A stretch of DNA of 64,000 nucleotides, taken from assembly GCA_964035545.1 (NCBI GenBank), contig OZ037773.1:4927751-4991750 (forward strand), in the 5' to 3' direction. The DNA is from Bugula neritina (taxonomy: Eukaryota; Animalia; Bryozoa). The position numbers were made by a program, and so were the translations under genes. Below are positions 23,694 through 61,333 of this stretch, piece after piece; within the stretch, counting starts at the first letter, position 1, and the number at the start of each line of letters is the position of its first letter. Below the pieces are notes generated by a model, which was not told the DNA's origin, ran no database searches, and worked only from the letters and a program-made list of their open reading frames with translations.

Positions 23694-26600
23694 TTAAGTC
23701 TCGCTGCTGTAGGTCTTTGGAGAGAAACTTAAAGTGAGGTTGGGCAGACTCCCGCCCCTAATCTTGTTTATTATGAAAATGATGAGAACACCCAGACCGA
23801 TACCAGCTACCAGGAAGGCAATGGCTATTCCAGCAGCAGCACCTGAAATTATACAACAAAGTTTAATTAAATATTGCTTAGCATAATGCTTAATAAAGTT
23901 ATAAGCTTGTATAAAACTTTCTACCTTGGTTCCTGTAATGTTTGTATATATGTTTACTAAAGCTATGTTTATATTATCCCATGACTTATTATATACCTTA
24001 TATTATGGAATCATAACAACAATCCCAATACTAACGGCCATACCTTTGCCATTTTTATTGAGTTACAAAGAATTGCTTACCATAACTAAATAGTGCATGC
24101 TGGTTTTTAAAGACTTTTCAAATTATCCAAATGCGTGCATCCAATATAATATTATAAGTTTATAACTCTATTTATTTAATAAACTCTTAACAATTTCCGT
24201 GGAGTTGTCTTTTCACTGAAAAGTTGAACTTCGTCTCAATTTTTCTATAGGGTATTAGGATGCTAAACAGTGTTAAATGTTTATTGGAATTAATTTTTTC
24301 TAGCAAAATATAAACCATTTAAATTTTATTTACGCGTGGCACTAGTCTTAGCAAAAATTATCTTTCTTGAAATTTTAAGAGTTATTGAACATTTAAAATG
24401 TAATATTTAATTGTTTTTACCCTTTGTAATTTTTTATTGTATGGGAGTAGACAAGGATTACAAAAGCCAACAATTCTTTTTTCAACCTTGACTTATAACA
24501 ACACGTGGTATGCAGTTCAACCGTGCATGATGGTTGAAGTTTACCTGCTAACATCTTAGTTTACTGCACGTCATGTAAGTATACTATACGTTAATTTTGA
24601 GTATACAGCTCTAAAACATAATTTATTATGAAAAGCTTATAAAAACCCGTCACCATTATTGGTTAAATCAACAATACAGCCACATAAATGCGACATACGT
24701 TGCTATGCTGACGTTAAATGATTGAGTCATTCCAGTTGTTATTATATTGTAGTCATGACTACTCACCTGCATCTAGTTTAATGACAGGAACTTCCTTCAC
24801 TGTCGTTACAGTCACAGTCTTTGTGACTGTGACAGTGTTGTTGATGTATCTAACTGTAGTACCATTCGCAAGATGTGCTATAGTATTCGGGATGGCAGAG
24901 ATTGGTCTCAGCTATAACATAGAATGCTGCATAGATTAGGTTTATGATAGTAAGACACTATGAATGTCACTGCAGCTCATCTATTGCAAATGTAAGTTAT
25001 TTTTAAAAGATGACACACTATTTATTAAAGTATTCTGTGCTAATTCCAGCTTACAGCTGGCATTCATGTATATTATATTTATATTTAAAAGCTGGTAAAT
25101 ATTAATGAATTTTTATATTAGAAAGTTAAATTTATATCAAAGTAATTATATGTCACTTTTTCAATGTTTCAAATCATTTTTTTAGGAAATATAGTTGAAC
25201 AAAATATAAATTATAATTACTTTATTTTAAAGCCACAAGCAAATTTTTAAACAATATTTACAACCTGCTAAGCTAAAAACTGTTTCTTTGAGCCCAAAAA
25301 TTGCAACTATGATTTCATGATCATATATAATTTCATCATTATAGTAGGTCATTATTGACATGCATTTTACCAACTTTCAAATAGTTTTATCAAAATCAAA
25401 AGTTAAAAATTGCCAAAAACTTTGACCAAATAAATACTTAATGTTTATAACTAAGACTTACCGTCCCGTCACCTATTGATCCAGTTTCAACAATAAAGTC
25501 ATTAGTAGTAATAGCCTTGTCGAGAGCTGCAATGGCGTTAGAAGTGGAGACAAGATACTTGGCGGGTAGACGGTCTATAGTACTTCCTTGTATTGTGGGC
25601 GGATCCAGGATCTGGAAACTGACTCTTATCTCGTTTCTGGTATCAGATTTCTCCCACTATAGTAAATGGACATCAAATTAAGCAAAATATTATCACACAA
25701 TATACTATGTTGGCCTCATCACATATATAATGTAACTGGTGATATATATATAAAGCAATAGTTTTGTTTAAATAAAATAGATGAACTTTATACAAATTAC
25801 CTAACTATTCTATTTGGACTTACATTTATGTTATTAACTCTGATAGGAGAGATTCCAAGATAACCAATCACAGATATAAGGAGCCAATAGTGAAACTCCT
25901 CTCTGTGCATTTCAATGCGTTCCGCTTGATCTCCTTCAATGTAGAAATGCACGTTTGACTTTTGATCGTCACGGAAACAGTTTCCAACATCAAAGACCCA
26001 AGGATTAGGCTCATCTTCATTGAAGTCAAAGATGTTATACGTTATTGTGTAGCCCAGACTCTAAAATGTAAAACATAATTTTATCCTAGAAAATACAAAG
26101 TTGTAAAAATATAAATTGTTTAAAGTTCCTTATAATTATAGTTTAAAGTAGCAACAAATAAAACCTAATTTTTGCCTAATAAAATTTTTTCTAAAAAGTA
26201 ATGCATGGCAATACATGCGTTGATGACAAATTAAATTTGTAGAAAATTGTTTTTGGCTTAATGGATTATATTTTCAACGCAATATTAGTTGTAATACTTG
26301 ATAGAAAATTTTGCCTAATCTATAGAAATAGGCACAATTGAAGAAATAATGTATTTTTTGCAATTGCTGTAAATAATATATTGTGAGTAAAACTGCATTG
26401 ATCAGCATATCTTTAGGATACAGCATTTTATTTAAAAAATACTTAAAACTGTTTCAACTTCTTGCAACATTTGTTATATTAATTACATGTGGTGAATTAT
26501 CATACTTAAAATTGTTATTTATTTAATGGAGTTTTTCAAGACTGCTAAAAATATTTGAAACTACCATGTCTTATAAAAAATAAATATGTTTTATCATGTA

Positions 26601-61200: not shown

Positions 61201-61333
61201 ATAATTAGAAATGGTCAGAGTGTATCAAACCTGGTAACTCCTTCCCAGGCACACAGACATTATCATTGGAGCCAGAGAATGATTTTGAAACTAAGCAGAC
61301 AAAGATGGCAAGATGTAGCAGCCGGTACTTCAT
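37217..61333 (-). CDS. Gene B: type-I membrane glycoprotein with three tandem ependymin/LolA-like modules, ~1925 aa
   Basis: 38 coding exons. Signal exon 61231-61333 (MKYRLLHLAIFVCLVSKSFS). Module 1: 60952-61056, 60674-60790, 59706-59845, 59186-59288, 58477-58634, 57774-57932, 57314-57434, 56916-57091, 56505-56684, 55770-56006, 54702-54896, 54450-54555. Module 2: 53888-53998, 53008-53133, 52043-52182, 51539-51641, 51238-51395, 50660-50818, 50099-50210, 49313-49488, 48329-48514, 47497-47733, 46401-46595, 46043-46196. Module 3: 45354-45464, 44970-45095, 44494-44633, 44007-44109, 43739-43896, 42580-42738, 42246-42366, 41294-41469, 40376-40561, 39566-39802, 38918-39112, 37900-38056. TM exon 37217-37368. 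Lengths sum to 5778 nt, in frame, and exon sizes recur between modules (140/103/158/159/237/195). Confidence 0.86.
38190..38305 (+). repeat. Dispersed intronic repeat, related copy at ~53260-53365
   Basis: Shared segments ttcattc..tgttt, aac(c)aca(a/g)ccatg..ttcatgcaa.ccg and cataatg.g.agtcatgga lie in non-homologous introns. Confidence 0.55.
39378..39484. repeat. (CAGC)n tetranucleotide microsatellite
   Basis: Perfect CCAG run preceded by degenerate TCAG/TCAA units. Confidence 0.97.
43461..43666 (+). mobile_element. tRNA-derived SINE
   Basis: A-box-like TGGTCTAGAGG (43472), B-box-like GGGTTCAAGCC (43515) and core ggtgatgttaggaagagcatccagtcataa. Related copies lie at ~60322 and ~61485. Confidence 0.8.
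44330..44512. repeat. 61-bp donor-containing minisatellite (gene B module 3), ~3 copies
   Basis: Same unit as 31585-32083. Confidence 0.92.
44617..44775. repeat. 32-bp acceptor-containing minisatellite (gene B module 3), 5 copies
   Basis: Same unit as 32189-32412. Confidence 0.93.
49062..49298. repeat. (GA)n microsatellite next to the donor at 49312
   Basis: GA/GGGA run. Confidence 0.98.
50489..50655. repeat. 34-bp minisatellite, ~5 copies, abutting the donor at 50659
   Basis: Unit ctcctatacttagactgagagccaagtgacacaa at 50491, 50525, 50559, 50593 and 50627. Confidence 0.93.
51895..52060. repeat. 61-bp donor-containing minisatellite (gene B module 2), ~2.5 copies
   Basis: Same unit as 31585-32083. 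Confidence 0.9.
52166..52300. repeat. 32-bp acceptor-containing minisatellite (gene B module 2), 4 copies
   Basis: Same unit as 32189-32412. Confidence 0.93.
55305..55645. repeat. Degenerate (CACTA/CACTG/CATTG)n pentamer tract
   Basis: Decayed pentanucleotide microsatellite in an intron. Confidence 0.85.
56315..56437. repeat. ~20-bp minisatellite (agtgactaactcacattgag), ~6 copies
   Basis: Visible tandem units ~70 nt into the intron after the donor at 56504. Confidence 0.88.
59930..60185. repeat. Degenerate ~21-bp tandem repeat
   Basis: Recurring cttaaa.tattcagagta-like units. Confidence 0.55.
60322..60425 (+). mobile_element. SINE copy, partial and diverged
   Basis: catgggtttgaatcc (B-box-like) followed by ggtgtgacaggaagagcatctagtcataattactcctg. 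Confidence 0.7.

Follow-up and report, generated by a model that had tools for sequence, protein, structure and literature searches.

Adjacent single- and triple-module membrane protein genes with predicted ependymin/LolA-type domains in the bryozoan Bugula neritina

We analysed a stretch of 64,000 nucleotides (nt) from the genome of the bryozoan Bugula neritina (assembly GCA_964035545.1, contig OZ037773.1, positions 4,927,751 to 4,991,750, forward strand; hereafter the window, with positions counted from its first letter). The window contains two tandem minus-strand genes, denoted A and B, which, as read from the sequence, encode type I membrane glycoproteins with one and three copies, respectively, of a repeat unit of about 600 amino acids (aa). 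According to structural modelling, this unit consists of two domains of the LolA superfamily, of the ependymin-related protein (EPDR) type (D1 and D2), followed by a ferredoxin-like alpha/beta domain (D3). To our knowledge, the only ependymin-related proteins described so far are small soluble dimers, the physiological ligands of which are still debated.

The initial annotation of the window, which was made from the sequence alone, had proposed two adjacent genes with one module (A) and three modules (B). All stretches without stop codons on the minus strand from 22 to 63 kb of the window were compared with each other by self-BLAST, which yielded four collinear sets of 12 paralogous exons, two copies of a signal-peptide exon and two copies of an exon for the transmembrane helix and tail. 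Splice sites were chosen so that each falls in the same alignment column and the same phase in all four module copies. Complete reading frames were obtained for both genes, and their end coordinates as well as the number of exons in gene B (38) match those of the initial annotation; all the sequence motifs that it quoted were located by a motif scan, which placed both genes on the minus strand; the annotation itself had named no strand. Gene A starts with an ATG at 34522 and its stop codon ends at 23694, and gene B starts with an ATG at 61333 and forms one open frame with a single terminal stop, which ends at 37217. The splice pairs are GT-AG in 51 of 52 cases, the remaining pair being GC-AG, with its donor after 50099. 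The window DNA is AT-rich (about 32% G+C). The two genes and their exons are as follows.

23694..34522, minus strand: gene A; 14 coding exons, 704 aa; signal peptide, one module, stalk, transmembrane helix, 24-aa tail
Gene A exons 1-7, minus strand: 34522..34417; 33562..33452; 32946..32821; 32205..32066; 31343..31241; 30803..30646; 30138..29980
Gene A exons 8-14, minus strand: 29293..29173; 28370..28192; 27040..26855; 26060..25824; 25656..25462; 24911..24767; 23842..23694
34417..34522, minus strand: gene A exon 1; start codon, signal peptide, VCEPGQEKP
23694..23842, minus strand: gene A last exon; transmembrane helix, 24-aa cytoplasmic tail, stop
37217..61333, minus strand: gene B; 38 coding exons, 1925 aa; signal peptide, modules B1-B3, stalk, transmembrane helix, 25-aa tail
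Gene B exons 1-13, minus strand: 61333..61231; 61056..60952; 60790..60674; 59845..59706; 59288..59186; 58634..58477; 57932..57774; 57434..57314; 57091..56916; 56684..56505; 56006..55770; 54896..54702; 54555..54450
Gene B exons 14-25, minus strand: 53998..53888; 53133..53008; 52182..52043; 51641..51539; 51395..51238; 50818..50660; 50210..50099 (GC donor); 49488..49313; 48514..48329; 47733..47497; 46595..46401; 46196..46043
Gene B exons 26-38, minus strand: 45464..45354; 45095..44970; 44633..44494; 44109..44007; 43896..43739; 42738..42580; 42366..42246; 41469..41294; 40561..40376; 39802..39566; 39112..38918; 38056..37900; 37368..37217
61231..61333, minus strand: gene B exon 1; start codon, signal peptide, VCVPGKELP
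37217..37368, minus strand: gene B last exon; transmembrane helix, 25-aa cytoplasmic tail, stop

The expected signal peptide, Thr-rich stalk, single transmembrane helix and tail of about 25 aa were all found, the stalk being rich in Thr, Val and Asn with N-x-T sites and the tails being 24 to 25 aa long. Comparison of gene A to database proteins by BLAST showed that its residues 1-702 align with residues 1-680 of a 680-aa protein of the bryozoan Watersipora (XP_067938774.1, here P0005) at 46.6% identity; this end-to-end alignment independently validates the gene A model. A reading in which A and B form one gene was rejected, given that B is terminated by a transmembrane exon and a stop, that a separate signal-peptide exon opens A, and that the two are 2.7 kb apart. 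The intron after gene B exon 21 carries a dinucleotide microsatellite (49055-49312, minus strand) that reads (SL)n in frame just past the exon 21 donor.

The four modules are homologous, as initially claimed, with lengths of 599-637 aa, identities of 60-71% and six conserved Cys each. Module B1 is 60-62% identical to the other modules, and B2 is about 70% identical to A and B3. The sizes of corresponding exons agree across the four modules (105-111, 117-126, 140, 103, 158, 159, 112-121, 176-179, 180-186, 237 and 195 nt) and are either equal or differ by multiples of three, so that the phases are identical between modules. The dN/dS ratios (nonsynonymous to synonymous substitution rates) between the four modules range from 0.12 to 0.18, which shows that all units are under purifying selection. 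The domain limits given below are protein residues and were derived from local hidden Markov models (HMMs) built on the family alignment.

24767..33562, minus strand: module A; gene A exons 2-13; D1 36-260, D2 277-493, D3 496-623
54450..61056, minus strand: module B1; gene B exons 2-13; D1 39-254, D2 266-485, D3 486-610
46043..53998, minus strand: module B2; gene B exons 14-25; D1 636-857, D2 868-1087, D3 1090-1219
37900..45464, minus strand: module B3; gene B exons 26-37, including the stalk exon; D1 1254-1477, D2 1488-1709, D3 1712-1840

The two beta domains within a module had been described as related to each other, and alignment of the D1 and D2 profiles with hhalign bears this out (probability 99.7%, E = 8 × 10−27, 189 columns). 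The suggestion, originally made from motifs, that these domains adopt a LolA/ependymin fold is likewise borne out at the level of predicted structure. We modelled P0005 with AlphaFold from an alignment of 45 single-module members with P0005 as the first sequence (mean predicted local distance difference test score, pLDDT, 81.8; predicted template modelling score, pTM, 0.74), and both beta domains of the model match EPDRs and the LolA superfamily. In a Foldseek search against the PDB, the top matches were the sponge carotenoprotein EPD-BCP1 (8i34) and EPDR1 of frog, mouse and human (6l9x, 6jl9, 6jla, 6e7o, 6e8n and 6jld), with E values of 1 × 10−7 to 1 × 10−6 and template modelling (TM) scores, normalised by the target, of 0.58-0.68; VioE, RseB, LolA and LprF ranked next. 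Comparison of the individual domains using VIA gave, for D1 (P0005 residues ~30-254), Z = 14.0 with 8i34 (root-mean-square deviation, rmsd, 3.0; 165 aligned residues), Z = 13.9 with 6e8n (rmsd 3.8; 176 aligned) and Z = 14.1 with VioE, and for D2 (P0005 residues ~263-488), Z = 13.5 with 6e7o (rmsd 3.1; 160 aligned) and Z = 13.7 with VioE. LolA, LolB, LprG and LppX were recovered at Z = 10-12. The sequence identity in the structural alignments to EPDRs is 12-18%.

At the sequence level, the link of this family to ependymins is weak but consistent, as judged from profile matches and Cys positions. Ten single exons of module B1 had no match in Pfam, because the exons are too short. Among the 45 members, Pfam Ependymin (PF00811) was the sole recurrent family below threshold (5 of 45; best E = 9.5 × 10−4), and a whole-genome scan with the same Pfam family gave weak exon-level matches on other contigs and none in the window. 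In EPDRs, conserved Cys occupy alignment positions 23, 94 and 186, as well as 148 in profile 1, with disulfides that connect the N-terminus to the beta9-10 loop and the beta3-4 loop to the C-terminus (PMC6280359, PMC6608618). Judged by order and local motifs against these descriptions, D1 contains four Cys in the EPDR profile-1 order (N-terminus, beta3-4 loop, ‘DC.Y.P’-like loop and C-terminus), which vary little or not at all across the family (C24, C113, C172 and C250 of P0005; module positions 2, 93, 152 and 229), and D2 contains a pair (C349 and C485 of P0005) that would correspond to EPDR positions 94 and 186.

The fold of D3 was predicted from a database fragment that starts near this domain (P0037, 244 aa), which was modelled with the family alignment (pLDDT 83.5) and yielded a beta-alpha-beta-beta-alpha-beta sandwich of the ferredoxin-like type. 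Foldseek returned no match for the D3 model at E ≤ 0.001. In an exhaustive VIA comparison, the highest values were those of the membrane-proximal domain of SorCS2 (Z = 9.1) and the C-domain of Trop2 (Z = 8.7-8.8), followed by Gpr126 SEA, MUC16 SEA5 and IA-2 (Z = 5.8-6.2), all of which are near the background that the tool states for a common fold; similarity to SEA in the ESM Atlas reached a feature score of 0.75. Pfam SEA (PF01390) had no match in the 45 members, and no G-S-[VI]-V-V autoproteolysis motif was found at the beta2-beta3 turn in the D3 sequences. The proposal of a third, possibly SEA-like, alpha/beta domain thus stands as regards the alpha/beta sandwich predicted by the model, whereas the SEA likeness holds only loosely, as a label for the class of fold and its location, because the SEA domains score only about 6 in Z and the autoproteolysis motif is missing.

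A separate question is whether the three modules of gene B belong to one transcript. Two linker exons connect the modules:

54450..54555, minus strand: gene B linker exon 13; joins the end of B1 in frame to the VCKPGSEAP start of B2
46043..46196, minus strand: gene B linker exon 25; joins B2 in frame to the VCKPGSE.P-type start of B3

Linker exon 13 begins with a phase-0 acceptor and ends with a phase-1 donor, the latter in the same phase as the donors of the signal-peptide exons, and no stop, transmembrane or signal sequence occurs between the modules in the spliced model of gene B. A metagenome contig (JGI 3300002729, 4,207 nt; L017) from a related species, with about 84% DNA identity, is collinear with gene B from exon 22 of module B2 to exon 28 of module B3. 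The exons on this contig are 93-97% identical to those of gene B, with indels in exon 25 only, which offset each other, and its introns show 70-85% identity and numerous gaps; linker exon 25 is retained at 94% DNA identity (49 of 51 aa), with both splice sites kept, and the introns flanking it are 75-81% identical, again with many gaps. Taken together, the presence of only two signal and two transmembrane exons, the in-frame linkers, the dN/dS of 0.12-0.18 in all modules and the collinearity of the metagenome contig support a single three-module transcript, as the initial annotation had assumed and as far as genomic sequence can tell. The competing possibility, that internal promoters or exon skipping generate separate or shorter products from gene B such that the 1925-aa protein is rare or absent, derives some plausibility from the lack of a three-module architecture in the 122 other family representatives (0 of 122) and from the main survey of EPDR evolution, in which McDougall et al. 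treated gene models with several ependymin domains in some genomes as prediction errors (PMC6280359). We nevertheless consider it improbable, given that a signal-peptide exon is absent from modules B2 and B3 and a transmembrane exon or stop from B1 and B2, that the linker exons are read through in frame with matching phases, that linker exon 25 is conserved in the related species while its flanking introns diverged, and that two-module proteins are annotated in several phyla. A further metagenome contig (Logan SRR4020080; L018) covers, like L017, the B2-B3 junction region of a related species, both contigs having about 84-86% DNA identity to the window. Environmental and host-associated metagenome contigs can thus be mined for comparative support of gene models of this animal.

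To delineate the family, we performed an exhaustive search with a profile of exon 11, built from the four window copies and two others of the same genome, which identified 123 representatives. Most of these are 600-720 aa long and match at residues ~430-520, and some are 1250-1400 aa long with two matches. They come from the bryozoan Watersipora, the molluscs Haliotis, Lottia, Patella, Liolophura, Solemya, Mizuhopecten, Magallana, Gigantopelta and Babylonia, the nemertean Lineus, the annelid Owenia, the rotifer Seison and the cephalochordate Branchiostoma, and all are named ‘uncharacterized’ or ‘hypothetical’. P0005 is the closest full-length database relative; the other proteins align with gene A at 25-30% identity. 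The protein library that was searched held no full-length protein of B. neritina itself; the only near-identical match was an open reading frame (ORF) of 100 aa, 97% identical to exon 11 of module B2, present on a JGI metagenome contig and on a Logan contig. An oyster member occurs on many Logan contigs of about 2.2 kb, a size that would fit assembled mRNAs.

A census of the family with the local HMMs found the D1-D2-D3 arrangement once in 52 proteins, twice in 5 proteins (of Haliotis, Liolophura and Seison) and three times in gene B only, and the arrangement D1-D2-D3-D2-D3 in 13 proteins. The triple module of gene B is a quantitative extreme of the family. A transmembrane helix and a short tail are present in nearly all members, and some members add PAN/Apple or fn2 modules. 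In one protein of Owenia fusiformis (P0034, 1400 aa), D1-D2-D3 occupies residues 754-1323, and the N-terminal part ahead of it is listed in UniRef as the ligand-binding domain of an ionotropic glutamate receptor; either the fusion is genuine or two gene models were merged. Many of the cytoplasmic tails (P0005-P0118; window 23694-23770 and 37217-37295) end roughly in hydrophobic-x-F-x-N/K-x-D/E, as exemplified by VAFVNKNFEN, VQFKNEDA and LSFANKNFDS, with LSFSPKTY and LSFYPSTY in the two window genes, and a few family tails carry NPxY instead (ENPTY, ENPAY). From its sequence, the aromatic-acidic tail pattern may be a sorting signal.

The nearest neighbours of P0005 in the ESM Atlas are clusters of mollusc and rotifer proteins of about 490-1015 aa (TM score 0.75-0.83), some of them with PAN domains, and in these clusters 80-100% of the members carry the Pfam 38.1 domains PF25898 (LolA_2nd_metazoa) and PF25899 (DUF7959); canonical ependymin clusters are also among the neighbours (feature score 0.91, TM score 0.62). 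As the structural neighbours carry these two domains, the domain type is already catalogued, and the PF25898/PF25899 proteins are almost certainly the same family as our 123 representatives, as judged by the predicted structures. Literature searches on membrane-anchored or tandem ependymin/LolA proteins and on the names of the Pfam entries did not bring up any study of this family. The initial description of the two genes as uncharacterised therefore holds for the literature searched but not for the domain databases, since Pfam 38 already contains the domain entries. Genes A and B add two new, so far unannotated members to a catalogued but unstudied bilaterian family that spans Spiralia and amphioxus.

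Comparison with known systems reveals both shared and distinct features. EPDR1/MERP, the fish ependymins and EPD-BCP1 (PF00811) share the LolA-type curved beta-sheet with D1 and D2 (Z = 13-14) and are, like the products of genes A and B, animal glycoproteins of the secretory pathway with a signal peptide. However, EPDRs are soluble, single-domain, homodimeric proteins of about 210 aa, whereas the products of A and B are multi-domain proteins of 704 and 1925 aa with a C-terminal transmembrane helix, in which two such domains stand in tandem and are joined by a third domain, a stalk, a transmembrane helix and a tail, with up to three copies of the unit. Canonical EPDRs are soluble and either secreted or lysosomal (PMC6280359, PMC6363788), and EPDR1 forms a homodimer whose two hydrophobic grooves lie on the same flat face and which binds fatty acids as well as anionic-lipid or GM1 liposomes (PMC6608618, PMC6363788). 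The bacterial LolA/LolB, LprG/LppX/LprF, RseB and VioE have the fold in common with D1 and D2 (Z = 10-14), and bacterial proteins of the LolA superfamily have a hydrophobic cavity on the concave sheet for acyl chains or hydrophobic substrates. These proteins are periplasmic or lipoprotein carriers or, in one case, an enzyme, and they lack the disulfide pattern, the tandem pair, the transmembrane helix and the stalk; the LolA/LolB carriers work with LolCDE, whereas the animal type I membrane proteins encoded by A and B have no sequence similarity to them and share the fold only at the superfamily level. The membrane-proximal domain of SorCS2, the C-domain of Trop2/EpCAM, the SEA domains (MUC16, Gpr126) and the IA-2 ectodomain are loosely comparable to D3, which in the model is an alpha/beta sandwich ahead of the stalk and the transmembrane helix, but the Z values are close to background, and gene B has copies of D3 between its modules as well, at a distance from the membrane. 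The PF25898/PF25899 entries cover uncharacterised metazoan proteins of about 600 aa and describe domains rather than a function; neither a protein with three modules nor the modular structure at the exon level was seen in the family representatives.

We consider it fairly probable that genes A and B encode membrane-tethered tandem LolA/EPDR-type proteins that capture or present hydrophobic ligands, where the architecture and the family are seen in sequences and models and the ligand role is proposed by analogy to the characterised proteins of this fold. Each beta domain would offer a hydrophobic groove, as in EPDR1, EPD-BCP1, LolA and LprG, and the covalent D1-D2 pair would probably replace the EPDR1 homodimer, resulting in a membrane-tethered platform with two grooves. 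Lipids, lipoprotein acyl chains or carotenoids could be the ligands, at the cell surface or in endocytic compartments. D3 might serve as a juxtamembrane spacer or a dimerisation domain, and the number of modules would change valency and reach, such that the gene B product would have six grooves and a longer reach; the initial annotation had likewise proposed surface or endolysosomal receptors for lipids or glycolipids, the avidity of which would be tuned by module number. A narrower version, which we put forward only tentatively and think may well not hold, equates D1-D2 with an intramolecular EPDR1 homodimer and regards the family as multivalent, membrane-tethered capture receptors for lipids, lipoproteins or carotenoids that would have been lost in vertebrates, where only soluble EPDR1 was kept, with valency and reach tuned by 1, 2 or 3 units. 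Several points weigh against the ligand-capture reading. The models of genes A and B were read from genomic sequence, and the fold prediction concerns an ortholog of 46.6% identity rather than the window proteins themselves. In the 45 members, PF00811 never exceeded its gathering score (19.6 bits in P0004 vs. 32.3 bits), and a search of the family profile against PDB sequences did not retrieve EPDR1, the matches being chance ones (E > 0.5). Furthermore, the enzyme VioE reaches Z values as high as those of EPDR1, so that a lipid-carrier role does not follow from the fold by itself.

Two other functional readings have to be weighed. The LolA-type domains could form a rigid scaffold of adhesion or recognition receptors for proteins or glycans, in which case module number would set reach, not avidity. 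Such a role would be in line with the best D3 matches, which are juxtamembrane domains of adhesion and sorting receptors (Trop2/EpCAM C-domain, Z = 8.7-8.8; SorCS2, Z = 9.1), and with the PAN/Apple or fn2 modules of some members, which are typical of protein or carbohydrate recognition; yet the characterised LolA-superfamily matches (EPDR1, EPD-BCP1, LolA/B, LprG/LppX, VioE and RseB) all use the concave sheet for a hydrophobic ligand (PMC6608618, PMC6363788), and each module, under purifying selection, retains two LolA-type domains, and we regard the scaffold role as unlikely. Less plausible still would be a release of the ectodomain by cleavage in D3 or the stalk, which would make these proteins secreted, EPDR-like carriers of pigments or lipids in body fluid or cuticle and leave to the transmembrane helix only a role in biosynthetic delivery. 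Canonical EPDRs are soluble, secreted or lysosomal, as cited above, which supports a released ectodomain; the best Foldseek match is a soluble carotenoprotein, and membrane-adjacent SEA-type domains, to which D3 is weakly similar (Z = 5.8-6.2; Atlas feature score 0.75), are often cleaved. Against release stand the missing autoproteolysis motif at the beta2-beta3 turn of D3 and the retention of the transmembrane helix and short tail across the family, the exon that encodes them being also the best kept (75%) between gene A and a nearby paralog described below.

These findings indicate that the EPDR-type pocket domain also exists as a covalent, membrane-anchored tandem in many invertebrate phyla and in amphioxus, and that a gene model in which several ependymin-like domains are combined need not be a prediction error. 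With single- and triple-unit paralogs next to each other, nature provides a genetically separable system in which the ligands of EPDR-type grooves can be sought. For practical purposes, the value of the finding is modest as long as neither a ligand nor an expression pattern is available.

The genomic neighbourhood contains a third, single-module paralog on the minus strand (C9:~4909744-4917300; loci L008, L010 and L005), about 10 kb beyond the start of the window, which has all 13 homologous exons at 43-75% identity to gene A per exon, the transmembrane/tail exon being the one at 75%. With this paralog beside A and B, the cluster comprises five modules in three genes. A phylogenetic tree places the five local modules in one group, the sister of the Watersipora protein (support 86/98), with the internal order unresolved; the amplification of modules looks lineage-specific, because the five modules form a single group. 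Two distant copies of the exon 11 region, 28-43% identical (L006, C2:9079892-9080134, plus strand; L007, C1:32477269-32477397, plus strand), are probably further family members, as judged from their sequences.

Exon 4 of A, B3 and B2 (32066-32205, 44494-44633 and 52043-52182) is 99.3-100% identical at the DNA level, B1 not being included, and the flanking introns of these three copies (about 150 nt on each side) are 83-95% identical, compared to 61-93% for other exons and 43-63% for other introns. From these identities, the exon 4 tract looks like recent gene conversion between the two genes and within gene B.

Elsewhere in the window, an intron-less ORF of 316 aa (9297-10247, minus strand) matches rhodopsin-family G-protein-coupled receptors (Pfam 7tm_1, E = 2.8 × 10−9, above the cut-off), and a (CA/TG)n run of about 400 nt occupies positions 1337-1757. 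Exons with a PAN/Apple domain (2319-2639, plus strand; E = 3 × 10−10) and a C-type lectin domain (3622-3966, plus strand; E = 2.3 × 10−5) are probably parts of one plus-strand gene; in molluscs, PAN domains are also found fused to the LolA-like family.

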